Below are positions 6,236-62,920 of a stretch of DNA of 64,000 nucleotides, one piece after another. This DNA comes from Dendrobates tinctorius. Lineage: Eukaryota. Under the pieces are notes generated by a model. The model was given only the letters and a program-made list of their open reading frames with translations. It was not told where the DNA came from and searched no databases. The stretch spans positions 8,432,001 through 8,496,000 of the forward strand of contig NW_027361810.1 of NCBI RefSeq assembly GCF_039654945.1. The letters run 5' to 3'. The position numbers and the translations under genes are program-made. Positions within the stretch are counted from its first letter, which is position 1; every line of letters starts with the position of its first letter.

Positions 6236-6317
<82 letters not shown>

Positions 6318-24264: not shown

Positions 24265-24356
24265 TTATTTAATGGTGTCTTCAGATGACGCAGACACTAC
24301 TTTTCCGTCCACGATCTCGTGCTGGGTCACCGTCACCTTCTGTATAGTGCTTGGTG
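24265..24356 (-). CDS. K18-like exon 8 (tail, 92 nt to stop)
   Basis: ccccacag|(A)[29 protein letters not shown]. Confidence 0.9.
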
Positions 24357-27300
24357 CTGTGGGGGAGATGCAGAATTAATCACAGTAAGCTTTTCAATTA
24401 GTGTGAATATAATGTAAAATTCCACTGGTCTGGGAATCTCTTCTCACAGCTGAGGGTTTGTTACAGTTGTATCCTTTGAGCTACACAATTCAGACTGATA
24501 CATTGTAACAGACTATCATGACAGGAGATACTTGTGCTTCTGATGTGTTCAGCTCACAGAGGATTGGCCTGATTTGATAAAATTGTTGAACCAGCAGCTG
24601 TAACAATGTTCCAATTCATTGACCGCAAGCACTTGTCTTAGGGCCCCGTCACACATAGCGACTCACCAGCGATCCTGACAATCATATGAACTTGTCAGGA
24701 TCGCTGGTGTGTCGCTACATGATCGCTGGTGAGCTGTCAAACAGGCAGCTTCACCGGCGATCAGCACCAGAGACGACGAGCACGCGCGTCGCTGTGTACC
24801 TTAGATACCAGCGTGCTGGTGCAGGGAGCTCGTGTGCAAGGTAAACAGCGGGTTTCTAAGCACCGCGCGGCACTTAGAAACCCGCTGATTACCAGCTCCC
24901 TGCACCAGTGCGCTGGTATCTAAGGTACACTGCGGGTTTCTAAGTGACGTGCGGCGCTTAAAACCTGCTGTTTACCTTGGATACGAGCTGGGAGCTTGCT
25001 GATCGTTGGTCTCCTGCCTGCCACACGATGCGTGCTGGCCAGCGGGAGACCAACGATCAAAAAAAAAATCCAGGGCTTTCGAGCACGATCGGCGATACCC
25101 GACGGGGGGGGGGGGGGGGGGCGGTCGCTGATAGGTGTCACACAGCGATCTGGTGAGATCGCTATTGTTGTGACTCAGCAGCGATCTCGCTGTGTGTGAT
25201 GGGGGCTTTAGGCCTCTTTTACATGTCAATCTTTTGACGTCAGTTCCAATCCGTGAAAGTGTGAAAAAAGGATCCGTTGCAGTTTGCAAAAAAAACTGAT
25301 GCACCGGATCTGTTTTTTTAGACGGATCCGTTGCAGCAGCCAGAGTCTGAAATTTATAGGAACAGGTGTCGAGAGAGAGATTTTTTGGTCTGTTCCAGAA
25401 CGGCTTTTAGGGTTAAATTGCATGAATGGAAAAATCTTCTGAGCATGCTCAGTTGAAAAAAGCGGGTCCGCCGCAGAAAAAAACGTTTACTCCACACGGC
25501 GGACACTTAATTTCCAACGGATTTATCAAAAAAATGGATGCAATGATGACCATCCGTCACAATCTGCTGTTAATGTTAGTCTTTGGGGAAAAAAAACATT
25601 CCACCAAAAAAAGATCCGTTTTTTTAAAAAAAGGGCGGATTTTGACTGACGTCAAAAGACTGAAGTGTGAAAGAGGCCTTAAAGTGGTCACAATATTGAC
25701 ACAAGCCCTTATTCATTATTGTCTGTGTACTTTTTCTGGTGTAACCATGGTTCTAACAGTGACTGTATTTGATCATTATTTAATTTGCAAATTTTTAAAC
25801 TTCTCTTTACTTGGTTTTGTCTTTCACCATTTTGTCTACGGTTATCTTTATCCAGATATTTTGGCATAATTCATCATTTGTGACTGTAAAATCTCTAACC
25901 ATTTTTGTGCAGTGTTACTCCTGTAGTGGAGTCCAAAATCTTTGGCACAGTTAAACTAAAGTGCCATTTTCTGCACTAAAAAGATAAGATCCACAAAAAG
26001 TATCTTATTTTTTACAGGAAAGATATACAGTACATCTTTGCACCGTGTTAGCCAGTAGATAGAATATTTAGAATTGAGAGTCCTCAGTGGTTGATACCAT
26101 CTTTTCAGTTCGCCATTAAAAGGTAACACATTGCAGCTTTCGGTAGTCTCGAAACCACTGAGGACTCTCAATTCTAAATATTCTTATTTTTTTAAAAATT
26201 CACTCATCAGTCTTCCTCCAGTTCGACAAATGTGCTGCAGAAAACTGCAATAAAGATCACAAGACAAACACAGAAAAGTCACTAATATTAAAAAGAAATT
26301 ATGAATTGGAAGCCCAAGAGGGTAAATTTATTAAAACTGTCTTTTGTGCTCATCTAAAACAGAAGCCGCTGGGGAAAGATGCAATAAACTTTTTAAAGGA
26401 GCATGTTGTGCTGTGTGCACCTCAGGCTAAAGTCTTAAGAAAATACAAAATACTGTATCCACTGCAAGTCAGAATAAAAGTTGATATTAAGGGGACAGTA
26501 GGAGAAAATTAGGGAAGCGAATCCAGGAGAAAAGATTTTAAGTATGGGATCATTGTGGCAATTAAGAGCCTCTCCGGCTACTGTTGTTCTTACTAATTCT
26601 CGATTTTCTAATCTGTTCAGAAGTTAAGATTTTCCTTTTTCTTACCTAATATTCACTTACCGCCTTTTGCTGACTCTGGACCGTTCCTGAAACACAAAAC
26701 CTGAATATTAGTAGAAATAATAAATATATTCCAAGACCTACCTATTTCTTAAATAAAAGCCATTGATCGATCTCCCCCATAGATAAAAATGTAATTGGGG
26801 TCAATATGTTGCGGATTTTAGCAACGGATTTGTGCAGATAAAATCCGTGATGTAATAAGATTCCTGCATGTGGATTAGATTTTAGCTCAGCGTGTCAATT
26901 TATGTTGCAGATTTTATTCATTTAATTTAAGCAATGGATAAATCTATAGAGAATCCGCATGGTGCTTATGGGAAGTTTATGGCCTATTTTGCTGAAAATC
27001 TGCTGTGTATAATAAATTATAAAAATTATTTTTAATATATAAAGTGAGATAAGAGTCTGATTTCTGAGCTCTGATTGCGGCTGTTACTTGTCTGTGGCTC
27101 CCTCCAGCAGGGTGCGGTAGGCGTGGATCTCATTCTCCAGCTTGGATTTTAGGTTCAGGAGGGCATCGTAGTCCCTGACTTGCCGCTCGATGTCAGAGCG
27201 ACAGGCGGCCAGCTCGTCCTGGAGTCGCGTCAGGAGGCGATTCAGCTCCATCAGGCTGGATCCATAGTGATCTTCTGTGTTCTTCAAGACGTGATCTAAA

Positions 27301-30300
27301 GAGTCCACCTGGGAATGAAGCAAAATGAAGGGGAGGTCACCAAGTGCACAGGGGGCAGATGGCATCTTCTAAACCGAAATGACGAAGGAAGTTCATTTTG
27401 AAAAGCGCGTCGGGGCGCGTTCTCAGGCATTCTCCGGCTCATTAGGTATCATTTTATTTCTTGCTCCCATCACCTTCCCCCCTCACATTGTGTGACACTC
27501 TTGTAGTGTCTTTTGTTTGTTCACTGCACACACTTTTTTAAACAATTTTTTTCATTGCACTATTGTCTGCACAGCTGCTGTTGTTATTATTCTTTATTAT
27601 TTTTTGTGTACTGTGTTTACAGAATTTTGGATATTTATTATTCTATGGTGCACTGTATACACAATTCCTTTTGGGGGCTTCATTAATGTTCCATCAATAT
27701 TTATTTTTATTTTTCTTTTTTCATTTTCCTTCTGAGCCTGTGCCTTATGGGTATACATTTTACCCTATGTTGTAGGATATTATAACCCAATATTACACAT
27801 TTATTTGGGATGCCTTTTTATTATTCATTTTTTATTTTATTTTATTTAAGTGTACACCCATTTATATATTATAGGTGTTTTTACCCATTCTCACGTGTTG
27901 CTGTACACATCATTTCCACTTTGGCACTCTGTCAGTATTATCTTCCACCATACTCATTGGTATTGGGTTCTAAACCGAAATGGCGCAACTTGTATGTGAA
28001 TTTTATGCCAAAGTGACAAGTAACAACACTTAGAAATCTTAAACTATGTCCACTCTCCTCGGTGCATCCTACATCCCACAATGGAGGGTCCTCCTCACCG
28101 TTTTTTGGAGGGTCTGACGTTCCATCTCTAAGGTCTGTAGCTGGCGCCGGAGGTCGGCCGCCTCATTCTTGGCTTGGTCCAGCGCCTTTGTGTTCACGCT
28201 TGTCTCCTGGGAAAGGGAATCGAACTGCGGCAAAGATGAAAAACTTTAAGACCATGTTCACACGTTTTGCTGCTTTTTTTATGCTCATTTTAAGCTGTGA
28301 GTTACGGTACCAGAAAAAGCTATGACGTTTCTGAAATCAACTGCGCAAACCTTGTTTTCTTTTCCTTCAGGATTTGGAAAACTGCTGCATTTTTGCAAAC
28401 TGCAGCATGTCACTTTCAGCGTTTTTGCAGCATTTTTTTTTACCCGTAGAAAGCAATGGGTAAGTGTAAAAACGCAGCAAAAATTGCAGGTATCGGGCTT
28501 TGGTGCAAAAACCTAAGGAAGTTGCAACATGATTTTTTTTTTTGAGGGAAACTAAAGTTCATCAGCATGCACAAGAGACAACAAGAAGGGCAGCAAAACC
28601 GGCTTTTTTGTAAGCAGCTTCTTTACTGGCAAGAGAGCAGGAAAGAAAAAAAAAAAAAAAGTATAGCAAAAATGCAACGTGTGAACATAGCATAAATGTA
28701 AACTCATATCCAGATGAGAGCAAAGTTCCAGCAACCACAGCGAGAGTCACAAAGTCACCGAGGCTTCAGAGCACAGCAGAGACCCTGCGATCTCCCCTTC
28801 TCTGTGCATCACCCCCTCTTTTTTTGCCGTGCATGCTTAGATTGTAAAACAACAATAAAAAGGGACCCCATTATGAAATCCATCACAACATAATGATTCA
28901 TAAAGGGAAACCTCAATTGAAAAGGGCTGATAGTCCTCTAAACTCTGGGATATTGGCACATAATTTGCTGAAGGTTCACTAGAAGCCCCTCGCTTCCAGA
29001 TATGAGAGTGGTCCCAACTCTTAGACCCACACATATACAGCTCAAAGATGAGGCATCAGGATATAATTAAACGTGAACTACCCCTTTGAGAAAAACCTAC
29101 GTAATATTATACTACATTGTTACAATGACTCCATTTGTGAGTTACAGACTGATACAGATATATACTGGGCAAATTTGATTCAATTTGTATTTTTCTTTTG
29201 GTCTTGCCTTGTTTTGATACGCATTCTCCGCATCCGCCCGGTTCTGCTCAGCCATTTTCTCATACTGGCTGCGGATCTGAGCGATGCTTTCGTTCAGGTC
29301 TGGCTTTTTTGGTGCGTCCACTTCAACCCTTACATTGTTAGTGGCTATGAGAGCCTGCATGGCCGCCACTTCCTGTAAGATAGAAAAAGGAGGCTGTGAC
29401 CACCGCTAGATAGCGGAACTAATATCCGTGTCTAATAACTTAAAGCTATAACATGTAAACACTGAAAATATGAAATTGGAACTGCATTACTGCTGTAGAA
29501 AACATGTTAACATAGAGCTTGCGCCTAGCTGTCCATATCATCGTAGGCTTATAGCCCGGGAGAGGCAGCATGTTAGGTTAGAGAGGTGCGCCTTGTCGCT
29601 GTGGTTGAGCACAAGTAAAATGGCCAATTTGTGCATTAAGTACCTTCATTATTTAACAGGTTTTCTACAGCAACAATGCAATTCCATATATTTAATGTTT
29701 ACATAAAACGTTTCAGAGTGTAGCTTTAATTTGTTATACAGAGCGGCTCTCTTAGCTTAAACCTGTTCACACTTGGCTTTTTCTGTTTGTCAGCAAAATG
29801 TTGACAGATTTCATACGGCAACCAGCAGAATTCTGAATGCAGCTTTGGATGTGATTGGAGTGTAAGAGAAGAGGTACAGTGTACATGAAGCCAAGTGTTT
29901 ACAAAGTTACTCAACTTCTGTATGTAAACATAAACACGCAGTGTAATCTGTGAGCAAGAAACCGCACACTGCTACATAATGTCAGATGAAAGAAAACCAA
30001 ACACACAGAACATACAGGGCTGAACCCGGATGAGGAGCACACCCGCTAAATAAATATGACAACTCTGTGCTACAGAAGGTGACGGATTCCTTATCAAGTG
30101 ACATTACTGAACTGAGATAAATAATAATGATGAAATAGAATCAGAGAAGTAATATATTAGTAACATATTGTAGACAGGGGTAGTTGTTATATTCTTGTAC
30201 ATGGGGGCAGTATTATAGTAGATATATTCTTGTACATGGGGGCAGTATTATAGTAGTTATATTCTTGTACATAGCAGCAGTATTATAGTAGTTATATTCT

Positions 30301-33300
30301 TGTACATGGGGGCAGTATTATAGTAGTTATATTCTTGTACATAGCAGCAGTATTATAGTAGTTATATTCTTGTACATAGCAGCAGTATTATAGTAGTTAT
30401 ATTCTTGAACATAGGGGCAGTATTATAGTAGTTATATTCTTGTATATAGGGGCAGTATTATAGTAGTTATATTCTTGTACATAGGGGCAGTATTATAGTA
30501 GTTATATTCTTGTATATAGGGGCAGTATTATAGTAGTTATATTCTTGTAAATAGGGAGCAGTATTGTAGTAGTTATATTCTTGTACATAGGGACAGTATT
30601 ATAGTAGTTATATTCTTGTATATAGGGAGCAGTATTATAGTAGTTATATTCTTGTACATAGGGGCAGTATTATAGTAGTTATATTCTTGTATATAGGGGC
30701 AGTATTATAGTAGTTATATTCTTGTCCATAGGGGGCAGTATTATAGTAGTTCTATTGTACATAGGAGCAGTATTATATTAGTTATATTCTTGTACATAGG
30801 GAGCAGTATTATAGTAGTTATATTCTTGTACATAGGGAGCAGTATTATAGTAGTTATATTCTTGTACATAGGGAGCAGTATTATAGTAGTTATATTCTTG
30901 TACATAGGGAGCAGTATTATAGTAGTTATATTCTTGTATATAGGGGCAGTATTACAGTAGTTATATTATTGTACATAGGAGCAGTATTATAGTAGTTATA
31001 TTCTTGTATATAGGGGCAGTATTATAGTAGTTATATTCTTGTCCATAGGGGGCAGTATTATAGTAGTTCTATTGTACATAGGAGCAGTATTATAGTAGTT
31101 ATATTCTTGTACATAGGGAGCAGTATTACAGTAGTTATATTCTTGTATATAGGGGCAGTATTATAGTAGTTCTATTGTACATAGGAGCAGTATTATAGTA
31201 GTTGTATTCTTGTACATAGGGGCAGTATTATAGTAGCTATATTCTTGTACATAGGGAGCAGTATTATAGTAGTTATATTCTTGTATATAGAGGCAGTAAT
31301 ACAGTAGTTATATTCTTGTATATAGGGGCAGTATTATAGTAGTTATATTCTTGTACATAGGGAGCAGTATTATAGTAGTTATATTCTTGTACATAGGGGG
31401 CAGTATTATAATAGTTCTATTGTACATAGGAGCAGTATTATAGTAGTTATATTCTTGTACATAGGGAGCAGTATTATAGTAGTTATATTCTTGTATATAG
31501 AGGCAGTATTACAGTAGTTATATTCTTGTATATAGGGGCAGTATTATAGTAGTTATATTCTTGTACATAGATGCAGTATTATAGTAGTTATATTCTTGTA
31601 CATAGGGGGCAGTATTATAATAGTTCTATTGTACATAGGGGCAGTATTATAGTAGTTATATTCTTGTACATAGGGAGCAGTATTATAGTAGTTATATTCT
31701 TGTATATAGAGGCAGTATTACAGTAGTTATATTCTTGTATATAGGGGCAGTATTATAGTAGTTATATTCTTGTACATAGGGAGCAGTATTATAGTAGTTA
31801 TATTCTTGTACATAGACGCAGTATTATAGTAGTTATATTCTTGTACATAGGGGGCAGTATTATAGTAGTTATATTCTTGTACATAGGAGCAGTATTATAG
31901 TAGTTATATTCTTGTATATAGGGCCAGTATTATAGTAGTTATATTCGTCTACATAGGGGCAGTATTATAGTAGTTATATTCTTGTACATAGGAGCAGTAT
32001 TATAGTAGTTATATTCTTGTACATAGGGGGCAGTATTATAATAGTTCTGTTCATAGGAGCAGTATTATAGTAGTTATATTCTTGTACATAGGGGCAGTAT
32101 TATAGTAGTTATATTGTACATAGGAGCAGTATTATAGTAGTTATATTCTTGTACATAGGGGCAGTATTATAGTAGTTCTATTCTTGTACATAGGGGCAGT
32201 ATTATAGTAGTTATATTCTTGTACATAGGGGGCAGTATTATAATAGTTCTATTGTACATAGGAGCAGTATTATAGTAGTTATATTCTTGTATATAGAGGC
32301 AGTATTACAGTAGTTATATTCTTGTATATAGGGGCAGTATTATAGTAGTTATATTCTTGTACATAGATGCAGTATTATAGTAGTTATATTCTTGTACATA
32401 GGGGGCAGTATTATAATAGTTCTATTGTACATAGGGGCAGTATTATAGTAGTTATATTCTTGTACATAGGGAGCAGTATTATAGTAGTTATATTCTTGTA
32501 TATAGGGGCAGTATTACAGTAGTTATATTATTGTACATAGGAGCAGTATTATAGTAGTTATATTCTTGTATATAGGGGCAGTATTATAGTAGTTATATTC
32601 TTGTCCATAGGGGGCAGTATTATAGTAGTTCTATTGTACATAGGAGCAGTATTATAGTAGTTATATTCTTGTACATAGGGAGCAGTATTACAGTAGTTAT
32701 ATTCTTGTATATAGGGGCAGTATTACAGTAGTTATATTATTGTACATAGGAGCAGTATTATAGTAGTTATATTCTTGTATATAGGGGCAGTATTATAGTA
32801 GTTATATTCTTGTCCATAGGGGGCAGTATTATAGTAGTTCTATTGTACATAGGAGCAGTATTATAGTAGTTATATTCTTGTACATAGGGAGCAGTATTAC
32901 AGTAGTTATATTCTTGTACATAGGGGCAGTATTACAGTAGTTATATTATTGTACATAGGAGCAGTATTATAGTAGTTATATTCTTGTATATAGGGGCAGT
33001 ATTATAGTAGTTATATTCTTGTCCATAGGGGGCAGTATTATAGTAGTTCTATTGTACATAGGAGCAGTATTATAGTAGTTATATTCTTGTACATAGGGAG
33101 CAGTATTACAGTAGTTATATTCTTGTATATAGGGGCAGTATTATAGTAGTTCTATTGTACATAGGAGCAGTATTATAGTAGTTGTATTCTTGTACATAGG
33201 GGCAGTATTATAGTAGCTATATTCTTGTACATAGGGAGCAGTATTATAGTAGTTATATTCTTGTATATAGAGGCAGTAATACAGTAGTTATATTCTTGTA

Positions 33301-36300
33301 TATAGGGGCAGTATTATAGTAGTTATATTCTTGTACATAGGGAGCAGTATTATAGTAGTTATATTCTTGTACATAGGGGGCAGTATTATAATAGTTCTAT
33401 TGTACATAGGAGCAGTATTATAGTAGTTATATTCTTGTACATAGGGAGCAGTATTATAGTAGTTATATTCTTGTATATAGAGGCAGTATTACAGTAGTTA
33501 TATTCTTGTATATAGGGGCAGTATTATAGTAGTTATATTCTTGTACATAGATGCAGTATTATAGTAGTTATATTCTTGTACATAGGGGGCAGTATTATAA
33601 TAGTTCTATTGTACATAGGGGCAGTATTATAGTAGTTAAATTCTTGTACATAGGGAGCAGTATTATAGTAGTTATATTCTTGTATATAGAGGCAGTATTA
33701 CAGTAGTTATATTCTTGTATATAGGGGCAGTATTATAGTAGTTATATTCTTGTACATAGGGAGCAGTATTATAGTAGTTATATTCTTGTACATAGACGCA
33801 GTATTATAGTAGTTATATTCTTGTACATAGGGGGCAGTATTATAGTAGTTATATTCTTGTACATAGGAGCAGTATTATAGTAGTTATATTCTTGTATATA
33901 GGGCCAGTATTATAGTAGTTATATTCGTCTACATAGGGGCAGTATTATAGTAGTTATATTCTTGTACATAGGAGCAGTATTATAGTAGTTATATTCTTGT
34001 ACATAGGGGGCAGTATTATAATAGTTCTGTTCATAGGAGCAGTATTATAGTAGTTATATTCTTGTACATAGGGGCAGTATTATAGTAGTTATATTGTACA
34101 TAGGAGCAGTATTATAGTAGTTATATTCTTGTACATAGGGGCAGTATTATAGTAGTTCTATTCTTGTACATAGGGGCAGTATTATAGTAGTTATATTCTT
34201 GTACATAGGGGGCAGTATTATAATAGTTCTATTGTACATAGGAGCAGTATTATAGTAGTTATATTCTTGTACATAGGGGCAGTATTATAATAGTTCTATT
34301 GTACATAGGAGCAGTATTATAGTAGTTATATTCTTGTACATAGGGGGCAGTATTATAGTAGTTATATTCTTGTACATAGGAGCAGTATTATAGTGGTTAT
34401 ATTCTTGTATATAGGGCCAGTATTATAGTAGTTATATTCTTGTACATAGGAGCAGTATTATAGTGGTTATATTCTTGTATATAGGGCCAGTATTATAGTA
34501 GTTATATTCTTGTACATAGGAGCAGTATTATAGTAGTTATATTCTTGTACATAGGGGCAGTATTATAGTAGTTATATTCTTGTACATAGGGGGCAGTATT
34601 ATAATAGTTATATTCTTGTACAGAGGGAGCAGTATTATAGTAGTTATATTCTTGTACACAGGGGGCAGTATTATAGTAGTTATATTCCTGTACATAGGGG
34701 ACAGTATTATACCGTCTTTCCCCGAATATAAGACACCCCCGAATGTAAGACGTACTAGGGGAATAATGGGGGATGCCTAATGTAAGACATCCCCCGTTTA
34801 TAAGACATAGCGGATCAGCGGTGCCCCGAAAGTAAGACGTTGTGCGGTACCGGTATAATGCATTAGGTTTAACATACCGGTACCGGTGCCTGTGTCCCCC
34901 GGGCAGAAGTCAGGGCCTCTCTGATTGGCCCAGCGGCTTCTGTGAGCCCGCCCGCCGGCCGCCGCCCTGACGTCACCGCTCATTGGCCAGTGTCCCCCTG
35001 CACGAGGAAGAAGAAGCCTGCCCTGCCCTGTCCCGCACCGCAGAGGAATCGCCATCCGGTAAGCAATGGCTGTGGGATACTGTACCATACCGTAATGGCA
35101 AGCTGTGGGATACTGTACAATGGCAGGCTGTGGGATACTGTACAATAATGGCAGGCTGTGGGATACTGTACAATAATGGCAGGCTGTGGGATACTGTACA
35201 ATGGCAGGCTGTGAGATACCGTACTGTAATGGCAGCAACCCTTCTGTATGGCAGGCTGCTGTGGGATACTGTATGGGACTGTATGGGTGACTGTGATACG
35301 GAACCATAAGCAATGCTTATACGCTATATTTTTGCCCCCAGACATGAGTGTTTCCGGTCCAAGTAAAAGGAAGAGCTACTCTGTGGAGTATAAAAAAGCC
35401 ATGGTTGAAGAATCTTGGGGCAAAAATGTAGTGGAGTTCTGCAAGGAGAAGATGTTGGATCACCGACTGTTCCAAAAATGGCGTGCAGAATACACTAACC
35501 TGAGTGAGAAAGCGGAGAGTGGAATGGCTAAAAGGCGTAAGGTTGGATGTGGTCGGCAGCCAATGTATCCCGAGCTGGAAAGCCTGGTGTGTGAGTGGGT
35601 TGCTGACAGGAGAGCGAAGACATTGGTGGTGACCAGGGCTCAGATTCAGGAGTATGCCCTTGCTGTGGCACCACAGTTTGACATTACCCCTGAACAATTC
35701 AAGGCGTCACAGCACTGGGTGGATAACTTCATGGAACGCAATGACCTGTCTCTGAGAAGATCCACGACCCTCTTTAGGCTGGAAGATGCAGAGATTGTGA
35801 AACGTGCATTTGCCTACAAGAAGTTTGTGGATGACACTGACTTCTCCAAATACAATCTTTGCCACATGAGCGCCATGGATGAAACTGCTGTGTTCATGGG
35901 CCAAGCAGCTCAAACCACCGTTGATCAACGAGGTGCCTCCTCAGTGTACGTTCCCTCCACCGCTTATGAAAGTGCACGTGTCACCTGCATTTTGGCGATT
36001 CGTCTGGATGGCACTAAAGTCACACCTTTGCTGATTTCAAAGGGCAAGAAGGACAAGATAGAGCGGGTTTCTGGTATTTATGTGCTGGAAACGGAAAAAG
36101 CCTGGGCCACACAAGCGGTTATAAGGAAGTGGCTTGATTTAATGCTGCCGCTTGTTATGCGAGGGAGCAAAAGAGGGATGCTGATCTGGGATGCAGCCAG
36201 CACACACCGGGCTAAAGACATGAAAAACTTCCTTCATGAGCGATGTATCGACCAGATCATGATTCCGGCAGGGATGACGGCTTATCTCCAGACTCTGGAT

Positions 36301-50200: not shown

Positions 50201-53200
50201 TGACTTGCTGCGTAAATCTCACATTTTCTTTTTTTCATCATTGCATCTTATTTTTATGTAAAAAAAACAAAAGCAATTTTGTGTAGTTCTGATTGAAATC
50301 TGTTGTTTTGAGTACACAGGTTCTAATGAAACCCATGTGTCTCTATGGTTACAGATTACAGACCATGTGTAGTAAAATCCCGCAGTCTGGTGTTACTTAT
50401 ACAAAACAGAAGTAGACTTAGGCTTATCTGTAATGTTGCTTCGTGGTTTATGTAGATGCATTATTGCAATGATAGTTGTTACAAAAGTTTATACACCCTG
50501 TAAACACATGTGAATCTCCCTTGCAGCATAAGCCAAGACTTGCATGAAGAAAAAGACAACACTTCCTTTATTAGCTGATTAGCTGAAAAGGGGATGCAAA
50601 ATTAATCATTGCTTTAAAAAAATTAAGGGGTCACTTGCTTTTGCAATGCACTGTTATAGAATCCACTTGTAGCAACCACTAGGGGGAGCTCACTGCATAC
50701 AGATTTATACAGCCACCACTAGGGGGAGCTCACTGCATACAGATTTATACAGCCACCACTAGAGGGAGCTCACTACATACAGATTTATACAGCCACCAAT
50801 AGAGGGCGCTCACTACATACAGATCATACAGTCACCACTAGAGGGAGCTCAGTACATACAGATTTATATAGCCACCACTAGAGGGCGCTCACTACATACA
50901 GATTTATACAGTCACCACTAGAGGGATCTCACTACATCCAGATTTATACAGCCACCACTAGGGGGAGCTCACTACATACAGATTTATACAGTCACCACTA
51001 GAGGGAGCTCACTACATACAGATTTATACAGCCACAACTAGATGGCACTCACTACATCCAGATTTATACAGTCACCACTAGAGGGATCTAACTACATCCA
51101 GATTTATACAGCCACCACTAGGGAGAGCTCACTACATACAGATTTATACAGCCTCCACTAGAGGGCGCTCACTACATACAGATTTATACAGCCACCACTA
51201 GAGGGATCTAACTACATCCAGATTTATACAGTCACCACTAGAGGGAGCTCACTGCATACAGATTTATACAGCCACCACTAGAGGGAGCTCACTACATACA
51301 GATTTATACAGCCACCACTAGAGGGCGCTCACTACATACAGATTTATACAGTCACCACTAGAGGGAGCTCACTACATACAGATTTATACAGTCACCACTA
51401 GAGGGAGCTCACTACATGCAGAATTATACAGCCACCAACAGGGGAAGCTCACTACATACAGATTTATACAGCCACAACTAGAGAGAGCTCACTACATACA
51501 GATTTATACAGTCACCACTAGAGGGATCAAACTGCATCCAGATTTATACAGTCACCACTAGAGGGAGCTCACTGCATACAGATTTATACAGCCACCACTA
51601 GAGGGAGCTCACTACATACAGATTTATACAGCCTCCACTAGAGGGATCAAACTGCATCCAGATTTATACAGTCACCACTAGAGGGAGCTCACTGCATACA
51701 GATTTATACAGCCACCACTAGAGGGAGCTCACTACATACAGATTTATACAGCCACCAATAGGGGAAGCTCACTACATACAGATTTATACAGCTTCCACTA
51801 GAGAGAGCTCACTACATACAGATTTATACAGTCACCACTAGGGGGAGCTCACTATATACAGATTTATACAGCCACCACTAGGGGGAGCTCACTACATACA
51901 GATTTGTACAGTCACCACTATGGAGAGCTCACTACATACAGATTTATACAGCCACCACTAGGGGGAGCTCACTACATACAGTTTTATACAGCCACCACTA
52001 GGGGGAGCTCACTACATACAGATTTATACAGCCACCACTAGGGGGAGCTCACTATATACAGGTTTCTATATACAGGTTTCTATATACAGCTCCCAATGAG
52101 CTTAAGACTAGATATATAAATCTATATGCAAGGAGCTCCCCAAGGTGGTGGCTACAGGCAGCAAGAACTGTATGGAAAGCAAAGCTCCAGTATAGGGATG
52201 TGTCATGACACAGCTATCGGGTGACCAGGGGCTCCGTCCCTGTCCATAACACTAGGGAGCTCCCTAGCTCACCCTGTTCTAAGGGATACTTCAGATGGCA
52301 AAGATGACCTTCTGTGACCTTGCCTTATGTCCTGAGTTAGTCCTCCATCTGCATCTGTTCTCTTCCCCCATCCAGGGAAGAGGGGGCGCTACTGTGCACC
52401 GTAGTACACCAACCTGACAAACAAGACAACACAAACAAGGGTTAATAGAAAACTCCAGGCATACAAAATATTCACTCCCATATAACAGGAATGCACTGGG
52501 GAGCGGAGGTAGGGGAATAAACCAAAATAGAGGAGGATAAGGAATTACCACACATACAAAGCCAACAACAGTCACAGATAACTCCTCCAACTCTCCACAT
52601 ATGTCCTCCTCTCCCTCGAAAGCCATGCAGCAAATGCTAGCTCTGACAAGGATTTCGAACAGAACCCAGGTTATAATGGGGAGAGGAATGGCTGAGCTCA
52701 GCTGAGAACACAGGGATTTCCAACATGGCTGATTAACCCCTGTTCTGTCAGAAGAAATAAATACATTTGAAACGAAGGAGAAGTGCTTCTTCTCAGCACC
52801 GCAGCAGGAATAATCAGATTCTGCGGTCTCCTGGCTCCACACTGTCGCGGGAACCCTGTGACAGGATGTTTTAGCTCCTAGAATATAGTGCAAGGGTATG
52901 TTTCCATGGTCAGCATTGGTAGCGCTTTGGACGTAGCTCCATCAAAAGCGCTGCCGGCTTTGTACGCTTGGTGATTCCGCGTGTGTCTATTGAACCATGC
53001 AGAATCACCGCATCCTACATGCTGTAGTCTAGAAAGACGCGCCGCATGTCCAGTTACACAGGGACGCCAGAGGTGTCCCTGCACGCTTAGTGGAGATGGG
53101 ATTTCATGAAATTCCCTCCACTATGCTGTAACATCTGGACGCTGCGGATTGGACGCTGCAGCTGTATGCAGCGTCCAATCTGCAGCATTTACTGACTGTG

Positions 53201-56200
53201 GGAACATACCCTAAGACCTATAAGAAAAGGTGAACACAGCCCTATCAATTTTTTTCACATGCAGAATAATGCAGGTTACATTTGACATCTACTGACAGCC
53301 GGCAGCAGCCCCGATCCCCATGATTGGCAGGTCTCTGTGTGCACATGAGGAGAGACTTGTCAGCACTGCCAAGATGTTGAGGACTGCATTGGACTAGTCA
53401 GTCGAGACATATAAACCCCCGCTGACTCTTCAAGCTGTTTTCTCTGAAAAAAACCCCGCAGCATTTCTTAGTAAAACATGCAGGACTCCAATGACGTAGC
53501 CAGTATCTAGCTCACGCTGCCCATGAATCTGATAACAGCTTCCCTTTAACAATGTGGGAAAACCCTTTAAAACTTCTCAAAGCAGAAGTGTTGTTACAGT
53601 TGTATCTAGACAATCCTATACCCTAAACACATCATTGTAACAATGTAACTTTTCATGTAGAATGTAGCAATCTGCAGTCCAGGCTGGGACTCACAGAAGA
53701 GTGATACATTTGTAAGGACCACATTGCAGGACAGATTTTCAGACTCTGGAGAGAAACATGACGGTTTCCCTTCATTGATAACAATCGGAGATGTTGGAAC
53801 TGATGATAAATATGGGAACTTTTCATTCTACAATGATTCAGCTTTATTGAGAAGCAGCCAGAAGCCTCCGGTCATTTCTCAGGTCTGGAGCACGTTCATG
53901 TTTTGTGAACCCATGTAGCACACAAACCGCAGGACTCCTGTAATCCTGGGCAGGGGCCACTCACAGAATGGTGGGAAAATGATTGTTGGCATCAGAGGAA
54001 TAATGGCCGGATCTTATTTCATTACTGGGTTATTGTGATTGATGCCCTCAGTAAACACAGACTGCATAATCCACAGGGCCGGGCCCTCCCTGCTGCCATT
54101 GTGCTGCCAACCTCCTGTACGGGGTGACTACACACCTGTGTGCTCAGTCCGCGGTGTTTGGGGTTTGTGGTTATGTATAAAGTCAGCACAGTTCTCATGG
54201 TACAGATACTGGGGTCGGCACAGTGCCACGAGGGCCACGGTACAATTGGCTCGAGAGATATTTTAAACCTTCTGGACCCCATTGCATTGCTAGCAGCAGA
54301 CCCCCCAACTATGCTGATCTAGCTACAATTGTGGTGATTTCTATTTTGCAGAGGGGTCTGGATGGATCACGTGCAGAGCCGGACTGGCCATCTGGCAATT
54401 CTGGCAAATGCCAGAAGGGCCTGTCTGGTCCCGGGCCGCCTTGTCTGCTACGTTGTTAACAGAATCCGTGTTCTCAAGACACCCATACTGTTAAGAGTTG
54501 TGACGGAGCACAAAGTCACCGACTCCATCACTTACCCCAGCAGCCACGGGTATCATTAGAAATATTGGTCTTGTAGTAAATCTTCCTTTCCTCCATCCAG
54601 GGAAATATTAGTAATATATCCCATCTGGCGCTGGGGACGGGGACAACATGGGCCTGTGTGATTCCAAATGCCAGGGCTGAATTTCAGCCCCAGTCCGTAC
54701 CTGATCACGTGCAATGAGAAAAGGTCATTCTCGACAGCACATTGTCCTGTGTAAACCAAGAACAATGGCAGCCAATGTGCAGCGGGCGACGTATCACAGA
54801 TCGTTCTATGTGCATCGCTAAGTGCAATTTGCCTGTGCAAATGGGCTGTAATATTGCAAAGTGGCCATTCTGCAGTGCAGGGCCCATGTGGGTCTCCTGG
54901 TGATGATGGATGGACATGCTATCGGAGCAACGTGCCCAGGTGACAGATCTGTGATAGATCGCCCGGTGTGCCTTTGCTCTCGCTTTACACGGGACCATGT
55001 GCTGCTGAGAATTTTGCTGCAAAAAAAAAAAATCATTTACACCCACTAAACGGGGCAAGATGATCGTCAAACAGATGTTCCTAGGAACGATGCTCGGGGC
55101 GTAGAAATGGACCTCAGCTCTGGTCGACCACTCGTGGCAGATTCATTATTTCATTTGCGCCTTTTTCTGTTTAGTTCTTGGTGTTTTGCGCCTGCTTTAC
55201 ATTTGTGCCTAATTCTTCTTTTAATTTGCACTTGTTTTCAAGTCTATTTAAAGCGGCAGCAGTTTCTTCACGTGTTTGGGCTATCAGGGATTCCATACGG
55301 TGAGATTAAGTTGCTATTTCTGCAAACCGCTCAGAAGGGGGCTCTATTTTCTTCCAGTGATGTGGGGGGGGGGTCACTATTTTTGCAGATTGTGTTATAT
55401 GGGTTAACAGTGATTTTTTTAGAAACTCTTTTGGATAGGGGGAAACATGTATAAAAGGACAAGGACTGCTTCTGGGGTTTTAGGAAAAGCCTCATCTGTC
55501 CTCTCCCGAATGGCCTTGATGTCCTCCTCTCAGAAGACCTTAAGGACTGGGCAGGACCACCATATGTGGGACATTGACTCTTCATGAGCCTCACAACGCC
55601 AGCATAAGTCAGAGACCTCAGGGAACCATCTGTGTAGGGCAGAAGGGACCCCATACCCCCCAGAGACTATTTTGTAGCTTGTCTCTCAAGATTTGTGGGA
55701 AAGGTGAAAGCATTTGTCCCATTGTTTCCTTGTAAATGTTTGGTGAAGTTCAGTTTCTCATGCTCTGCAAAAAGGTGGGGGCGTTCCCACGTCATTAGTA
55801 ATTTATAAAGAACAGAAATGGCGCGTGCAGGAACAGAGGGGGCTACACGAATTTCTTCAAAAGGGTCCATTGTCCGGGTGAAATTCGCATGTCTGTCAAC
55901 GGATGTTCCAAAGTGTCAAAGTTGTGTGTATTCAAAGACATGTGATGCCTCAAGAGCCGGACCCCCTAGAATCGCAGACAGAGGCAGGAGAGACCCCCGA
56001 GACCGGTATCAGGTGGGTTTTTTTAATCTGTTTTACACATAGATTACTCACACCTGAATAAAGTTTTTTCAGATTTTACCTGGTTGTGGTGCCGGATATA
56101 ATCCTCTCCTTTTCCTTTATTTTTCATGTACACCATGGTGGGACAAGTTTCAAGATTCCAGATATTTTTGGCTGATTCCTCATTTTTTAATTTTTCAAAT

Positions 56201-59200
56201 GTTGCAAAATTTGTCATCAATGAATATAGCGAAGTGGGCAACTTTTTGTGATTAAAAAAAAGCACAAAACAGGTCAAAAACAAAAATAAAGAGCATTGCT
56301 AACTTTGCACAAAAATCGTAAGCCACATGCACCATTTTAAAGAATTTGGAGCAAAAAAACAAATAAATACAGGACTGAAAAAATAAAAATGCAAGTGTAA
56401 ATTGGGTCTTTAATTCACTCTTACAGCACCATCTAGTGGACATATGTAGTGACTACACTGAGGCAATTCTGCATTGGAAATTGAACATTACCAAATTAGC
56501 AGAACTTTGTCACCTTGTGCCAAATATTGGCTCTAATGACAGCTCAGATTTAAGCCTGGATGATATAATGAAGTTCCTATCTATTTTTTTAAGTTTTATC
56601 TCAAATTGTTTACTATTAATTAGTAAATTGTGACTTTACATTGGCACATTGGATTTGTAATTTTTCAGCAGATGTTTCTAAGATGTGAACAATCTTACAG
56701 GGATTGTATTGTAATATTACACTGTTCTGCTACTTTGCTGTTGTACAGGGTGGGCCATTTATATGGATACACCTAAATAAAATGGGAATGGTTGATGACC
56801 TAGATCGGCGCACTGAATTTGCAGAATGGGCAAAACAAAAATTGGAACAGGACCCTCAGTTTACACAGAACATTATGTTCAGTGATGAGGCAGACTTTTT
56901 TGGGTGGGCCATTTATATGGATACACCTAAATAAAATGGGAATGGTGACAGTTTTCTTGCGTAGGGTGTCTTGCATTGAAATCTGCTGCAATGACCCAGG
57001 TACTGCGTTCACCAGACATCAACACAATTTCTATCCGCTCCTCACGTGTAAGGGTCTGTGCACACGCTGCGGATTCTTGGCCGCTGCGGGTCCGCAGCAG
57101 TTTTTGCTGCGGTGTACAGTACATTATTCCCTATGGGAATAAAAAAACGCAGTGCAAACAGTGCAGATTTTTTCCACCCGGTTTTCCTGCGGATTCCACT
57201 GCGGCTTGCCATCTTCTCCATTGTGGAGATGAAAAACCGCAGGGCAGAACCGCAGGTCTTTTGACCTGCAGATTTACCTGCAGATTCTACAAAATCCGCG
57301 CGGCCAAATCCGCAGCGTGTGTACGTACCTTTAACCTCTGCGACATGTCAATGGCTGTAATCAAAGAGAAACTTGGAAACAACTCATGAAAGAATAAAGT
57401 TACATTAAAACCAAGCACACCATTGTTTTTCTTGTGAAATTCTCAATAAGTTTGATGTCACATGACCCTCTTAACATTGGAAAAAAAAAAGTTGGATCCT
57501 AAATGGCCGACTTCAAAATGGCCGCAATGGTCACCACCCATCTTGAAAAGTTTCCCCCCTCCCATATACTAATGTGCCACAAACAGGGAGTTGATATCAC
57601 CAACCATTCCCATTTTATTTAGGTGTGTCCATAGAAATGGCCCACCCTGTACATTGACAGCTGCAGTGAAGTCAGAATTACACACAACCTCATTGTCGCT
57701 ATACATGAGGACTAACTTGGCCCGTGCAAAATTTTCGCACATTGGTCTTCGGGTCGCTGGCAATTTCAGAAAAAGCCAGCTGGTCAAATGTAAATGTATT
57801 TCATGAGATGATGAACACAGTCTTCTGCTGAACTACAAGTACCAGCAATAATTTCAGACCTTCCTCCTGCAAAACCTGTTTTCTGCTGAGCTACAAACAC
57901 CAGCAGTAACTGCAGACTTTTCCCTGCAAACACTTTGTCTTCTGCTGAACTACAGTATCGGGGACAGTGATGATAATGTGTGCAAACTGTAAAGCGCTGC
58001 GGAATATATTAGTGCTATATAAAAATAAAGATTATTATTATTATTACCAGCAATAATTGCACATTTTTCCCCTGCAAAAGCCTGAACTACAAGTACCAGC
58101 AATAAAAGCAGCCCTCCCCCTGCAAGGTCTCTACTATACGGTCTGTTTCCATCTTTACAGTCATTTCATTAGTGCACAGTGAGGCCAGATCGCTTCTCCC
58201 GTTTTGTGTATACAGCTCCCATGCAGAGTTAGGCGTCTCCATGGCAGCAGACGAATCTCATCACCACATGTAGCCCGTTACATAGTAATATGATAATTAG
58301 CGTACATTATGTGATTGATGCTCCAGTGATTGTTATCTGACAGGTCCGGGACCTGGAGAGACAGAACAAGATCCTGAAGACCCAGCTGAGTCTCCTGAAG
58401 GAGAAGGACACGTACAAGTCCAACATCGATCAGATCACGCTGGCCTCCAGCAATCACCTGAAGCAGCAGATCGATGGCCTCCTGCATGAGAAGGACAAGC
58501 TGCAGGCCGAGCTGCAGAACATGCAAGCCGTGGTGGAGGAGCTAAAGAGCCGGTATGCCTGCTACACAGCGCCAAATACCTGCCCCTATAATGCTGCCAT
58601 ATGGTGCACGAATAATGGCGACATACAACAGTGCAATAATGACACCACTGTAGTGCTCAAATAATAAATGATAACTGTAAAATATGATCGAACTAAATAG
58701 TGCCACGCATTGCCCATATCACATGGCCATACATTGTATATATACGTAATAGTGCCTTACACAATAATACTGCTATGTAGCCGTCAAATAATAATGCTAC
58801 AATATCGAAATATATAACTAAAAAATGCCGCCATACAAAGTCTATCTAGTAATGCCATATGGTGCATGTAGAGTAGTGCAATACACAATGCCATGATAAT
58901 GCTGCTATGAAGCGCTCAAATAATAACGCTATAATAACTATGATATTTCACATGGACATTGGATCTGTTTTTTCAGATTGAGCACCCGTTCTTTTGGGCA
59001 TAATGGCGTTTCTATAGTGTGTGACTTGATAAAGCAGGATTGCTTGTGCTTTGTGGTGGCGCAGCTGTGCCGATTTCTTTTTCTCTCATGTATTGACTTG
59101 TATGATATTATATAATATCACTAAATAATACCAAAATACAGGGCCATGCATTGCCCATATAATACCGCCATTTATTAGATACGTAATAGTGCTATACACA

Positions 59201-62200
59201 GTGCCATGATAATATGGCTAGGATGTGCTCAAGTAATAACTAATAATAAATAATTAAATAAAGCCCTAAAATAAGTATCATGTATTATCTATAAAATACT
59301 GCAATATAGTGGTTACATAGTAGTGCCTTACTATAAAACCAAAATATTACTGCTATATAGTGCTCAAATCGTAACACTATAATGATATCTATATAGCAAT
59401 ATGTATAACTAGATAACATCACCATATAGTGCAAATATAATAGTTCCATACACACTGTCATAATACTGTTATATAATGCTCAAATAATAATAGTGCTATA
59501 ATAAATAACGCTCAAACATGGTGGAGGCCCAGGAGTCATTGGATCACATATCCAGATCTTCATTATGTACCAGAGCGCAGCACCTCCAAGGAACAAATCC
59601 CTGAATAATACACTTTAATTTGTTTTTTTTTATCTTTTGCAGATACGAGGATGAAATCAACAAACGGAATCAATTAGAAAATGACTTTGTGCTGACGAAG
59701 AAGGTGCGCGCTTATTAAATTATCAAGTGATAAATCTTAATTGGAGGTGGGGGCGCTATAGCATTGATGTCTATGACAAATATTGGCTCACAGCAATGGG
59801 GAAAAGTGGTACTGCAGGTGACACAGGGGAAAAAATGTATCAAAATTGTAACAAAAATATTTTCCCAAAATGGTGACTATCAAATCATTACCGGTGACTC
59901 TGCTTCACTGTATAAGTGAATTGTACTTAATATTTTAATTTGGATCAGTACATAAATATTAATTCTCAGACTCGGACCTCCCCAACATTAGATCACAAGC
60001 CTTGTGCTTCCCTTAGGTCACCATTGAAATAAGGACTCAGGTTAAAGGTACCGAAACTGAACTTTAGGGTCTTCCCTCTGTTTTAACCCCTCAGGACCTG
60101 GATGACACCTATCTGCATAAAGTGGACAATGAATCCAAGTTGGAAAGTCTGACCGACGAGATTGAGGTTCTGAAGCAGCTGTATAAGGAGGTAACGAGCT
60201 GACTGTGGGGCCCACAGCTGAGGGTTTGTTACAACTGAATCCAGTGTAGACCATACTATGTGAGCTAAACACATCAGCAGCACAACGCTCTCTCCTGTAC
60301 AGGTGGTTTGTTACACTGTATCAGTGCAGGAAATATCTCCGGGCTTTTCCTCTAAATGCAGGAAATTCAGGAGCTGCAGTCTCAGGTTCACAGCGACAAA
60401 GTGACGGTGGAGCTGGACAACAGCCGGGACCTGGAGATGAAGCACATCATGGACGAGGTGCGGGCGCAGTACCAGACCATGGCGGAGAAGAGCCGTCAAG
60501 AGGCCGAGCACTGGTACAAGAGCAAGGTGAGGGGTCCTGGGGATCTTTGGGCACTATAGTGGCCCCTTGTTCTTTACGGTGGTCCCCCCGACTATACAGG
60601 ACCCCTGTTATCTGTCGGCTCATGTTTTGATGACTCCGTCCACAGATTGATGATTTGGTGAACCAGGGTAAGCGGGCGAGTGACGAGCTGAAGGCGCTAA
60701 AGAACGAGATGGCGGATCTCCACCGGATGATACAACGCGTCAACAGCGACAATGACGCCCTAAAGAATCAGGTATGGGGGTCCGGAGTCTGCCCGATCTC
60801 TCAGATCCCCACGGAGCCCCCTCTTCAGTGCTGGACGCAATGTGGCACACAGACAGTGCCAGTGATGGTGCCCGCAACACCCAGCACACGGTGCCCCCAC
60901 AACCGCCTTTACAGGGGCGCCTCCGCATGTTGTGGGTTCTCAGCCCCCTATATACAATCTAGTATATGATAATAGCTGCTGTTAAAGGTGGCAGTGAACC
61001 CCTTTATCTACGTGGTACAGGGACGCACCATATCACTATGCTTTATAGAGCTCGCCAGGGAGCCCCACTGCCCCCAGCTGTGTGTAAAGCCACCATGCTG
61101 CCACCAACAGCCGTGCAGCGGTGTAGATTGATGAAGTCACAGGATCTCCGAGTATCTGGACAGACAGACATGGGCATCCTCTCTACTATCCCCTATAGGC
61201 GGTGGCTCATAATGCACCATAGCTGTATGTTGTGGGACCGCTGCACGAGTCGTCCCTCCCAAAGGTCAAATACATATATAATTACATATTATAAATGAAT
61301 CCCCCGAGAGCTGGAGCTCCTGCCCGAGGCTTCAGATCCATTTTTCAACCCATTTCCCTCATTTTTAGAGGACCAGTCTGGAGAACAACATCACCCACAC
61401 AGAGGAGAATGGGGAACAAGCGATCCAGAACGCCAAGGGCCACGCGCAGGAGCTGGAGGACGCGCTGAGGAGGGCAAAGCAGGATATGGCGCGCAAAGCC
61501 AAGGAATACCAGGACCTGATGAACACAAAGCTGGCGTTGGACATTGAGATCGCAACATACCGGAAACTGCTGGAGGGTGAAGAGACCCGGTGAGTGCAAG
61601 GAAATGCATTTATGGACATTGAGCTGAATTACATCATATACTATACTCCAGAGCTGCACTCACTATTCTGCTGGTGCAGTCACTGTGTACATACATTACA
61701 TTACTGATCCTGAGTTACCTCCTGTATTATACTCCAGAGCTGCACTCACTATTCTGCTGGTGCAGTCACTGTGTACATACATTACATTACTGATCCTGAG
61801 TTACCTCCTGTATTATACCCCAGAGCTGCACTCACTATTCTGCTGGTGCAGTCACTCTGTACATACATTACATTACTGATCCTGAGTTACATCCTGTATT
61901 ATACTCCAGAGCTGCACTCACTATTCTGCTGGTGCAGTCACTGTGTACATACATTACATTACTGATCCTGAGTTACATCCTATATTATACTCCAGAGCTG
62001 CACTCACTATTCTGCTGGTTGTTAATGGAATCAGTCAGTGAGCTTTGTTGTCAGGCTTCCTCCCATCAGTGCAGCTAACCTCCTATCATGCGGGGGGCAC
62101 TTATTTTTCTTTGGCATAACAATGTTGTTTCCATTTAGGTTGAACAATCATCCCTCAAATTCTCAGATCTCTGCCGTGGATAAATTGGGTGAGTTTTCTC

Positions 62201-62805
62201 TGTTTGTTTTTTCCTCGCTGTCTCTGTGCTGCGATTATTTTATGAAGGGTTAGGTTCGTCCACTGATTGTAGACCTCAGTAACAAAAGTAACAGAGATAT
62301 AAAAGATGCAAGTGGTCACCCAGGACCTCATGTATCTAATCCTATCCTGTGATACTGTCTGCTGAGCTGTGTATCTAATCCTATCCTGTGTGATACTGTC
62401 TGCTGAGCTGTGTATCTAATCCTATCCTGTATGATACTGTCTGCTGAGCCGTGTATCTAATCCTATCCTTGCTGTGTGATACTGACTGCTGAGTTGTGTA
62501 TCTAATCCTCTCCTGTGTGATACTGACTGCTGAGTCGTGTATCTAATCCTCTTCTGTGTGATACTGTCTGCTGAGCTGTGTATCTAATCCTATCCTGTGT
62601 GATACCGTCTGCTGAGCCGTGTATCTAATCCTCTCCTGTGTGATACTAATTGTATCTTTCTGCAGCCGGTCTGTTGAATTATGATGGGAAATCTTCTTCT
62701 TTGGCACGAAATTCCCCAAACGCCAAGAAAGTTGTTCTGGTGAAGACGATTGAAACCTCTGACGGCAAACAAGTCTCAGAGGCGAATCACTATTCCAAGG
62801 AATGA
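46941..62805 (+). CDS. Keratin, type II cytoskeletal, K8-like (divergent paralogue); whole-gene span, 9 coding exons, 1356 nt, 451 aa
   Basis: Exons 46941-47228, 58344-58552, 59643-59703, 60095-60190, 60362-60526, 60646-60771, 61369-61589, 62139-62188, 62666-62805. Sizes 209/61/96/165/126/221 fit the KRT8 layout. Motifs [36 protein letters not shown], tail [16 protein letters not shown]. Confidence 0.94.
47710..49628 (+). mobile_element. CR1 LINE, 5'-truncated, degenerate ORF2
   Basis: [41 protein letters not shown]; CR1 3' end GGTCCCTTCCAAC...(ATTCTATG)n. Confidence 0.93.
50668..52060. repeat. 40-bp minisatellite, ~34 copies (K8-like intron 1)
   Basis: Unit CCACCACTAGAGGGAGCTCACTACATACAGATTTATACAG. 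Confidence 0.96.
52201..52863. mobile_element. Solo LTR (663 bp)
   Basis: TGTCA...TGACA termini with a perfect 5-bp TSD GGATG (52196-52200, 52864-52868); no internal coding region. Confidence 0.8.
52894..53211. mobile_element. Harbinger-type MITE
   Basis: GGGTATGTTTCCA...TGGGAACATACCC; flanks CAA/TAA. Confidence 0.6.
54374..54703. mobile_element. hAT-type MITE (330 bp)
   Basis: CAGAGCCGGACTGG...CCAGTCCGTACCTG; perfect 8-bp TSD ATCACGTG. Confidence 0.82.
55200..55950 (-). mobile_element. L1-clade LINE ORF2 C-terminal remnant
   Basis: Minus-strand [33 protein letters not shown] is a CCHC zinc-knuckle; many stops and frameshifts. Confidence 0.75.
56746..57649 (-). mobile_element. Internally deleted and rearranged Tc1/mariner-superfamily element
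   Basis: TA TSD. ~50-bp TIRs CAGGGTGGGCCATTT...GGAATGGTTG. Transposase remnants [21 protein letters not shown] (minus) and DRRTEFAEW...IMFSDEADF (plus). Confidence 0.8.
57052..57330. mobile_element. Harbinger-type MITE nested in the mariner remnant
   Basis: GGGTCTGTGCACACGCTGCGGATT...AATCCGCAGCGTGTGTACGTACCT; TAA/TTA flanks. Confidence 0.72.
58344..58552 (+). CDS. K8-like exon 2 (209 nt)
   Basis: [21 protein letters not shown]...[17 protein letters not shown](R). Confidence 0.95.
58570..59510. repeat. Old, degenerate AT-rich tandem repeat (K8-like intron 2)
   Basis: Recurrent ATAGTGCTCAAATAATAA / AATACTGCTATAT units; resembles the reverse complement of 43100-44010. Confidence 0.55.
59643..59703 (+). 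CDS. K8-like exon 3 (61 nt)
   Basis: [20 protein letters not shown]. Confidence 0.95.
60095..60190 (+). CDS. K8-like exon 4 (96 nt)
   Basis: [32 protein letters not shown]. Confidence 0.95.
60362..60526 (+). CDS. K8-like exon 5 (165 nt)
   Basis: [55 protein letters not shown]. Confidence 0.95.
60646..60771 (+). CDS. K8-like exon 6 (126 nt)
   Basis: [42 protein letters not shown]. Confidence 0.95.
61369..61589 (+). CDS. K8-like exon 7 (221 nt)
   Basis: RTSLENNI...[38 protein letters not shown](R). Confidence 0.96.
61620..62018. repeat. 86-bp tandem repeat, ~4.5 copies (K8-like intron 7)
   Basis: CTCCAGAGCTGCACTCACTATTCTGCTGGTGCAGTCACTGTGTACATACATTACATTACTGATCCTGAGTTACCTCCTGTATTATA. Confidence 0.93.
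62139..62188 (+). CDS. K8-like exon 8 (50 nt)
   Basis: catttag|[18 protein letters not shown]|gtgagt; phase 2 to phase 1. Confidence 0.85.
62331..62648. repeat. ~41-bp tandem repeat, ~8 copies (K8-like intron 8)
   Basis: TGTATCTAATCCTATCCTGTGTGATACTGTCTGCTGAGCTG; degraded relative at ~47610-47710. Confidence 0.92.
62666..62805 (+). CDS. K8-like exon 9 (tail, 140 nt to stop)
   Basis: (A)[45 protein letters not shown]. Confidence 0.9.
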
Positions 62806-62920
62806 GCTGTGCATAGCAGAGCCGACTGTGCGGACACCCCATCACTGTGCCCTGCAGCCCCACCTGCTCACACCTGCCACTGCTGGTATCTGTCACTGCT
62901 GATATCCCCCTCACTGTCCT

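Follow-up and report, generated by a model that had tools for sequence, protein, structure and literature searches.

Keratin chains of types I and II form obligate heterodimers, and one gene of each type lying head-to-head beside ARPC2 raises the question of what such a pair is: the canonical KRT8/KRT18 genes in a new place, a recent duplicate of them, or a second and older pair. The question arises for the poison frog Dendrobates tinctorius in a stretch of 64,000 nt (NCBI RefSeq assembly GCF_039654945.1, contig NW_027361810.1, positions 8,432,001 to 8,496,000 of the forward strand), hereafter the window, in which two keratin genes, type I on the minus strand and type II on the plus strand, diverge from start codons at 45052 and 46941, respectively. 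An earlier reading made from the letters of this stretch alone (the first-pass annotation) described two intact divergent genes downstream of ARPC2 and took them for an old paralogous copy of the K8/K18 cassette, and the positions, the matches to the Filament domain and the open reading frames agree with that description. The analysis leads to the conclusion, with a probability of roughly 93%, that the two genes are the poison-frog orthologues of Xenopus tropicalis krt18.3 and krt8.2 and thus represent a second ancient head-to-head K18-like/K8-like pair, which is intact, transcribed and linked to ARPC2 from sturgeon to turtles, and whose type I lineage stands apart from canonical K18 and is missing from archosaur and mammal proteomes.

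The first-pass annotation knew of no functional keratin gene at this position, which proved wrong, as the genes are named krt8.2 and krt18.3 and have been published as “subcluster 4,” a second head-to-head krt18/krt8 pair apart from keratin clusters 1 and 2 (Kimura & Nikaido, bioRxiv 10.1101/2020.05.06.063123). Subcluster 4 was reported as conserved from sharks to X. tropicalis, was not found in caecilians, birds or mammals, and the two krt18/krt8 pairs were read as ancestral (10.1101/2020.05.06.063123). ARPC2 does not appear in the supplementary files of that paper, and the name “krt18.3” was found in no searchable paper.

A second keratin pair linked to ARPC2

According to Suppl. Table 1 of 10.1101/2020.05.06.063123, X. 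tropicalis krt8.2 occupies chr9 85,208,205-85,219,545 on the minus strand with nine exons and krt18.3 chr9 85,221,870-85,232,679 on the plus strand with eight, the canonical krt18.1 (seven exons) and krt8.1 (nine exons) lie on chr2 at 147.7 and 147.8 Mb, and a solitary third K18-like gene, krt18.2, with nine exons is located on chr8. The X. tropicalis orthologue of the window type I protein (P0185) was found in a locus at chr9 85,211,962-85,241,893 that contains, in order, a type II gene (minus strand), a type I gene (plus strand) and a P34-Arc gene (minus strand). As this locus coincides with the tabulated ranges and the sequences agree, the pair in the window corresponds to krt8.2/krt18.3. 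The type I gene (24265..45052, minus strand) encodes a protein of 415 aa that is 69% identical to X. tropicalis krt18.3 as against 44-45% to canonical frog and caecilian K18, in line with the first-pass impression of a divergence far beyond that of true orthologues. For the type II gene (46941..62805, plus strand, 451 aa), exons 1 and 2 match the X. tropicalis chr9 locus at 71-73% identity, and the N-terminus MSLYNNRYG as well as motifs of the 1A and 1B segments are common to the published X. tropicalis krt8.2 sequence, while krt8.1 differs at both. On the basis of synteny, this sequence match and the published tree, the plus-strand gene can be regarded as the krt8.2 orthologue. Compared with the Xenopus pair, the window pair has the same ARPC2 flank, the same head-to-head arrangement outside both keratin clusters and the same exon numbers (nine and eight), but its introns are much longer and full of satellites and transposons, intron 4 of its type I gene carries a GC donor, and its tail exons are complete where the published Xenopus sequences end before the tail motifs. 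These differences are of species level only.

The age of the type I lineage follows from a maximum likelihood tree of 70 rows, obtained by a quick search with support from the Shimodaira-Hasegawa-like approximate likelihood-ratio test (SH-aLRT) only; its outgroup consisted of unnamed library proteins, two of which fell inside the ingroup. The window protein belongs to a clade (SH-aLRT 95 with 70 rows, 99 with 36 rows) of frogs, caecilians, salamanders, squamates, turtles, lungfish, the coelacanth zgc:92380 protein, sturgeon and paddlefish, bichir, gar, bowfin and eel. A different clade unites the canonical K18 of sharks, coelacanth, amphibians, reptiles, birds and mammals, and species with both type I genes have one copy in each. 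Forcing the frog copies of both kinds into a single clade (36 rows, LG+G4 model) lowered the log-likelihood by 352 and was rejected by the approximately unbiased (AU) test with p = 1.6e-118, which upholds the first-pass view of an old paralogue. Since both clades hold ray-finned and lobe-finned members, the duplication behind the two type I lineages predates the divergence of bony vertebrates. The window type I gene thus belongs to the K18-like lineage “A2” (Xenopus krt18.3, fish zgc:92380), with which it shares the clade, the head-to-head type II partner and the convergence with ARPC2.

The window shares the order type II, type I, ARPC2 with Ranitomeya variabilis, X. tropicalis, Anolis carolinensis, Emys orbicularis and Acipenser oxyrinchus; in the sturgeon the last ARPC2 exons were located by tblastn. 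The first-pass annotation had assigned the pair a tissue role in amphibians, which is too narrow a frame, since lizard, turtle and sturgeon have this pair next to ARPC2 as well. In comparison with the fish zgc:92380/K18-like proteins (sturgeon, gar, bichir, eel and cyprinids), the window protein shows 45-53% identity and falls in the same type I clade, and ARPC2 lies convergently downstream in sturgeon and eel. At the Anguilla anguilla locus (CM023579.1), a TPH-domain gene adjoins the K18-like gene upstream, and within 10 kb no type II keratin was found; the eel seems to have lost the type II partner or to have it elsewhere.

Neither among the best 120 matches of the frog query nor among those of the turtle query did a bird, crocodilian or mammal occur, and both lists reach fishes at 45-53% identity. 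As archosaurs are the nearest relatives of turtles, an orthologue from this group should have ranked high. The K18-like lineage is therefore absent from the annotated archosaur and mammal proteomes, as the first-pass annotation had supposed for mammals, and this absence implies at least two losses. In caecilians, Suppl. Table 1 lists a lone krt18.2 with eight exons on Rhinatrema chr6 and further K18-like genes on chr8 (10.1101/2020.05.06.063123). Given this lone gene and the three caecilian proteins found in the K18-like type I lineage, caecilians may lack the pair rather than the type I gene.

How the second pair arose is a separate question, on which its flank may bear. Human ARPC2 is located at 2q35, a HOXD-type region, near DES and WNT6/WNT10A. 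Paralogues of these genes lie beside the two keratin clusters, namely PRPH and WNT1/WNT10B at 12q13 and GFAP and WNT3/WNT9B at 17q21, and this arrangement of DES/PRPH/GFAP and WNT genes is a classic paralogon pattern of the second round of vertebrate whole-genome duplication (2R; the first round is 1R). Anchored by ARPC2, subcluster 4 could be placed on the 2q35/HOXD-type paralogon, and the three keratin loci (the type II cluster plus K18, the type I cluster and the ARPC2-linked pair) would then descend as 1R/2R ohnologues from a single ancestral K8/K18 cassette, as the first-pass annotation had inferred for the pair. The third copy would have undergone at least two losses (in archosaurs and in mammals), and separate losses would have removed its type II partner in the eel and, by the published table, in a caecilian. 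We consider the chances of this scenario, including a lineage-specific role of the pair in poison-frog skin, evenly balanced; such a role is conceivable because krt8.2 has been proposed as a poison-frog hind-limb color locus. The alternative, which appears rather doubtful, is that a local or segmental duplication of ancient date was followed by a move of the pair, which would then be an old paralogue but no ohnologue. It finds support in the report that subcluster 4 has no synteny with clusters 1 and 2 (10.1101/2020.05.06.063123). It is countered by the paralogon pattern around ARPC2. Two K18/K8 pairs reported in lamprey also speak against it (10.1101/2020.05.06.063123). Shark and lamprey members are known from this paper only, in which 1R/2R is not discussed for the pair and the link of the ARPC2-anchored pair to a paralogon is not made. 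A literature search returned no paper tying keratin loci to Hox paralogons.

Gene models and transcription

An ancient pair could also have survived as a relic, and a reading in which one or both genes are decaying was prompted by two features: the exon sets of the first-pass annotation close neither frame, leaving the type II frame open at its end and the type I tail in need of an extra exon, and the donor of type I intron 4 carries GC in place of GT, unlike five other species. The completed models speak strongly against it, since an exon of 26 nt in the type I gene and one of 50 nt in the type II gene close both frames.

The type I gene consists of eight coding exons of 378, 83, 157, 165, 126, 221, 26 and 92 nt with an open frame (minus strand: 45052-44675, 42868-42786, 38640-38484, 29372-29208, 28224-28099, 27308-27088, 26686-26661 and 24356-24265, the last including the stop codon). 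The 26-nt micro-exon was traced through an extra tail segment of a Ranitomeya variabilis protein of 416 aa (P0001), retrieved in a library search with exon 1, to which the window protein is 96% identical. The first AG ahead of the tail exon is in the wrong frame after exon 6 when the micro-exon is left out. A second AG acceptor 7 nt downstream had been considered and was dropped once P0001 showed the micro-exon, and a length of 224 nt for exon 6 was corrected to 221 nt by a check of the donor. The intron 4 donor (AAG|GCAAGA, with GC at 29206-29207 on the minus strand) is the only splice site that is not canonical. At the equivalent position GT is present in X. tropicalis, Anolis, Emys, sturgeon and eel as well as in the canonical K18 of Mixophyes. 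In the model that NCBI lists for D. tinctorius (“keratin, type I cytoskeletal 18-like isoform X2,” P0154), exons 4 and 5 are nevertheless joined in frame; the window protein is identical with P0154 up to an alternative end (99.7% overall).

Read-through at the donor of the micro-exon (GT AAG TGA, 26652..26660, minus strand) accounts for this alternative end and in alignment with isoforms X2 P0154 and P0152 yields a tail-less form ending in AKGGK: the X2 isoform of 387 aa gains GK and a stop codon and lacks the tail motif. The read-through at 26652-26686 also fits the “isoform X2” of 386-388 aa annotated in many frogs. As the published Xenopus krt18.3 and krt8.2 sequences likewise stop before the tail motifs, both genes may regularly give rise to a protein without the tail.

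The type II gene has nine coding exons of 288, 209, 61, 96, 165, 126, 221, 50 and 140 nt, again with an open frame (plus strand: 46941-47228, 58344-58552, 59643-59703, 60095-60190, 60362-60526, 60646-60771, 61369-61589, 62139-62188 and 62666-62805, the last including the stop codon). The 50-nt exon 8 is required for the frame to close and was revealed by RNA contigs only. Splicing of exon 7 straight to the last exon was rejected, as the frame is lost, and an alternative donor inside the LLEGEE motif was dropped after the RNA contigs had shown exon 8. Contigs of 1487-1565 nt from four RNA runs (X1, X3, X19 and X21) join type II exons 2-9 at GT..AG sites, and the intron depth in these contigs is zero over the examined range 57000-62900. 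For the type I gene, exon 1 is complete (share 1.00) in X2, X3 and further runs from this organism. About 30% of the sequence words of 44600-47300 are present in runs X1-X4, a share close to the combined length of both genes' first exons. With spliced type II contigs and type I exon 1 both present in X3, the two genes are transcribed in one sample. Taken together, the closed frames, the type II splicing in four runs, the whole type I exon 1 in RNA contigs, the in-frame P0154 model and the identity with Ranitomeya leave the decaying-relic reading very little room.

The assignment of the two genes to keratin types agrees with their domain content. Every rod exon tested in both genes matches the Filament domain (PF00038; profile positions 2-62, 143-197 and 241-312, E values of 5e-12 to 2.5e-24). 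Against PDB chains, the plus-strand gene scores 80.4 bits with K5, 77.4 with K1 and 30 with K14, which clearly makes it type II. The 2B end of the minus-strand gene scores 42.6 bits with K10/K14, 37.9 with vimentin, 37.5 with K1 and 30 with K5, so that by these matches its assignment to type I holds by a narrow margin over K1 and vimentin, in keeping with a diverged protein. The AlphaFold model of type II exon 2 is a single helix with a predicted local distance difference test score (pLDDT) of 97.8, and comparison with AFDB Swiss-Prot yielded no match that could be shown.

The type I gene, with its stop codon at 24265, lies tail-to-tail with ARPC2, and the type II stop codon is at 62805. The ARPC2 coding exons were placed at 4794..19514 on the plus strand (end approximate), convergent with the type I gene, by seven tblastn exon matches of 63-100% identity, which are a lead only, and by Pfam P34-Arc matches to two of the exons (E values of 6e-14 and 1e-13). 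The window contains no run of N, and tblastn with both finished proteins detected no further intermediate-filament-like exons in it, in agreement with the first-pass statement that no other keratin is present there. Between the divergent start codons lies an intergenic region of 1.9 kb (45053..46940), presumed from the gene geometry to be a shared bidirectional promoter. The conserved divergent arrangement and this distance would fit shared regulation, by which the intergenic region could control both genes in epithelial cells of the simple or apical kind. There the two proteins would be expected, from established keratin biology, to join in an obligate heteropolymer of type I and type II chains.

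Relation to the canonical KRT8/KRT18 genes

The window pair resembles canonical KRT8/KRT18, which lie at the edge of the type II keratin cluster (human 12q13; krt8.1/krt18.1 on X. tropicalis chr2) in being a divergent type II/type I pair of the simple-epithelial type. The K18 and K8 hallmarks cited by the first-pass annotation are all present: the 165-nt exon 4, the VEVDAPK motif and a conserved K18-type tail motif in the type I gene, and the 209-nt exon 2, the FSSRS head and a K8-type tail motif in the type II gene. These two exon lengths and the tail motifs IVDGKVVS and VKxIExxDGK are common to both pairs. In contrast, the window pair belongs to the other clade and has other neighbors on another chromosome, its type I gene has eight exons where the canonical krt18.1 has seven, and its type II protein has a short head without the glycine-rich stretches of krt8.1. 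The type I gene lies outside the mammal and bird K18 group and also does not occupy the edge of a type II cluster. At canonical loci, the shark K18 is arranged head-to-head with a type II gene of 446 aa, and no type II gene was found within 10 kb of the canonical K18 of Mixophyes.

In view of the shared exon sizes and tail motifs and of the NCBI label “keratin 18-like,” the pair could be imagined as the true K8/K18 orthologues, fast-evolving and translocated beside ARPC2 in a genome with no other K8/K18. This is hardly credible, as a separate canonical “keratin 18” exists in Ranitomeya variabilis on a chromosome of 788.7 Mb (the K18-like gene lies on one of 249.8 Mb) and also in Phyllobates terribilis and Anomaloglossus, the window protein is only 44-45% identical to canonical amphibian K18 and falls in the other clade, and the linkage to ARPC2 recurs in lizard, turtle, sturgeon and eel; the reading would now require that D. 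tinctorius alone had lost the canonical pair. Just as implausible is a duplication of K8/K18 that was recent and specific to frogs or amphibians: motif similarity is its sole argument, and against it stand the AU rejection of a frog-only clade and the amniote and ray-finned fish orthologues flanked in the same way.

Some points limit the identification of the window pair as an intact and transcribed krt8.2/krt18.3 pair distinct from K8/K18. The RNA evidence on the type I gene covers exon 1, and the RNA runs are coded. The assignment of the type II gene draws on synteny, the sequence match to krt8.2 and the published tree; no type II keratin occurred among the 150 representatives. The separate canonical K18, which the first-pass annotation had asked for and which the three other dendrobatids possess, was not seen by name in D. 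tinctorius itself.

Intron repeats and meaning of the pair

The long introns of the window genes contain several repetitive elements. In type I intron 3, a pogo/Tigger-like DNA transposon of 2291 bp (34710-37000) with terminal inverted repeats of 26 nt (96% complementary) is inserted in an array of a 35-bp satellite. Its intact open reading frame (35248-36666, plus strand, 472 aa) encodes HTH_Tnp_Tc5 and DDE_1 domains and points to a copy that is young and possibly active. The satellite (consensus beginning TAGTAGTTATATTCTTGTACATAGG) comprises about 130 copies with a higher-order period of 209 bp at 30181-34711, 36999-37513 and 38355-38445; it is split by the transposon, extends nearly to type I exon 3 and accounts for a strong excess of G over C at 30-34 kb. 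In the type II gene, an 86-bp repeat (4.6 copies, 61624-62019) lies in intron 7 and a 41-bp repeat (7.7 copies, 62331-62647) in intron 8. Their summed word depth in the contigs of the RNA runs reaches 10^4 to 10^6 as against 15-90 for the keratin transcript, and they are probably dispersed repeats that are transcribed or abundant genome-wide. The 11-kb intron 1 of the type II gene contains fragments of open reading frames (47647-49441 and 50671-52065) that by eye resemble the reverse transcriptase of long interspersed nuclear elements; a Pfam search with the fragment 47647-49441 returned nothing. A 40-bp tandem array of 35 copies is located in the same intron.

Several reports bear on the type II gene under its annotation name, for which the present locus is the expected orthologue. 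In the corneal epithelium of Xenopus tadpoles, krt8.2 marks apical cells (10.1101/2020.08.06.240036). In Ranitomeya imitator it is a candidate for an association with hind-limb color, and differential krt8.2 expression in the skin of D. auratus is cited in the same study (10.1101/2023.04.20.537757). The krt8.2 locus of poison frogs is said to be hard to sequence.

The pair as such was already known: it is annotated at NCBI, its genes are named in Xenopus and its evolutionary meaning is published, so that the window represents a correct rediscovery. The additions made here are modest. ARPC2 emerges as a conserved flank from sturgeon to amniotes, as the synteny comparison suggested by the first-pass annotation confirmed in frogs, lizard, turtle and sturgeon, and this flank provides a handle for a test of the paralogon. 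The retention of the lineage in squamates, turtles and caecilians, the corrected poison-frog exon models with their two tiny exons, and the RNA evidence for both genes are further additions. For work on poison frogs, the structure of krt8.2, a candidate in color association, is now fixed.

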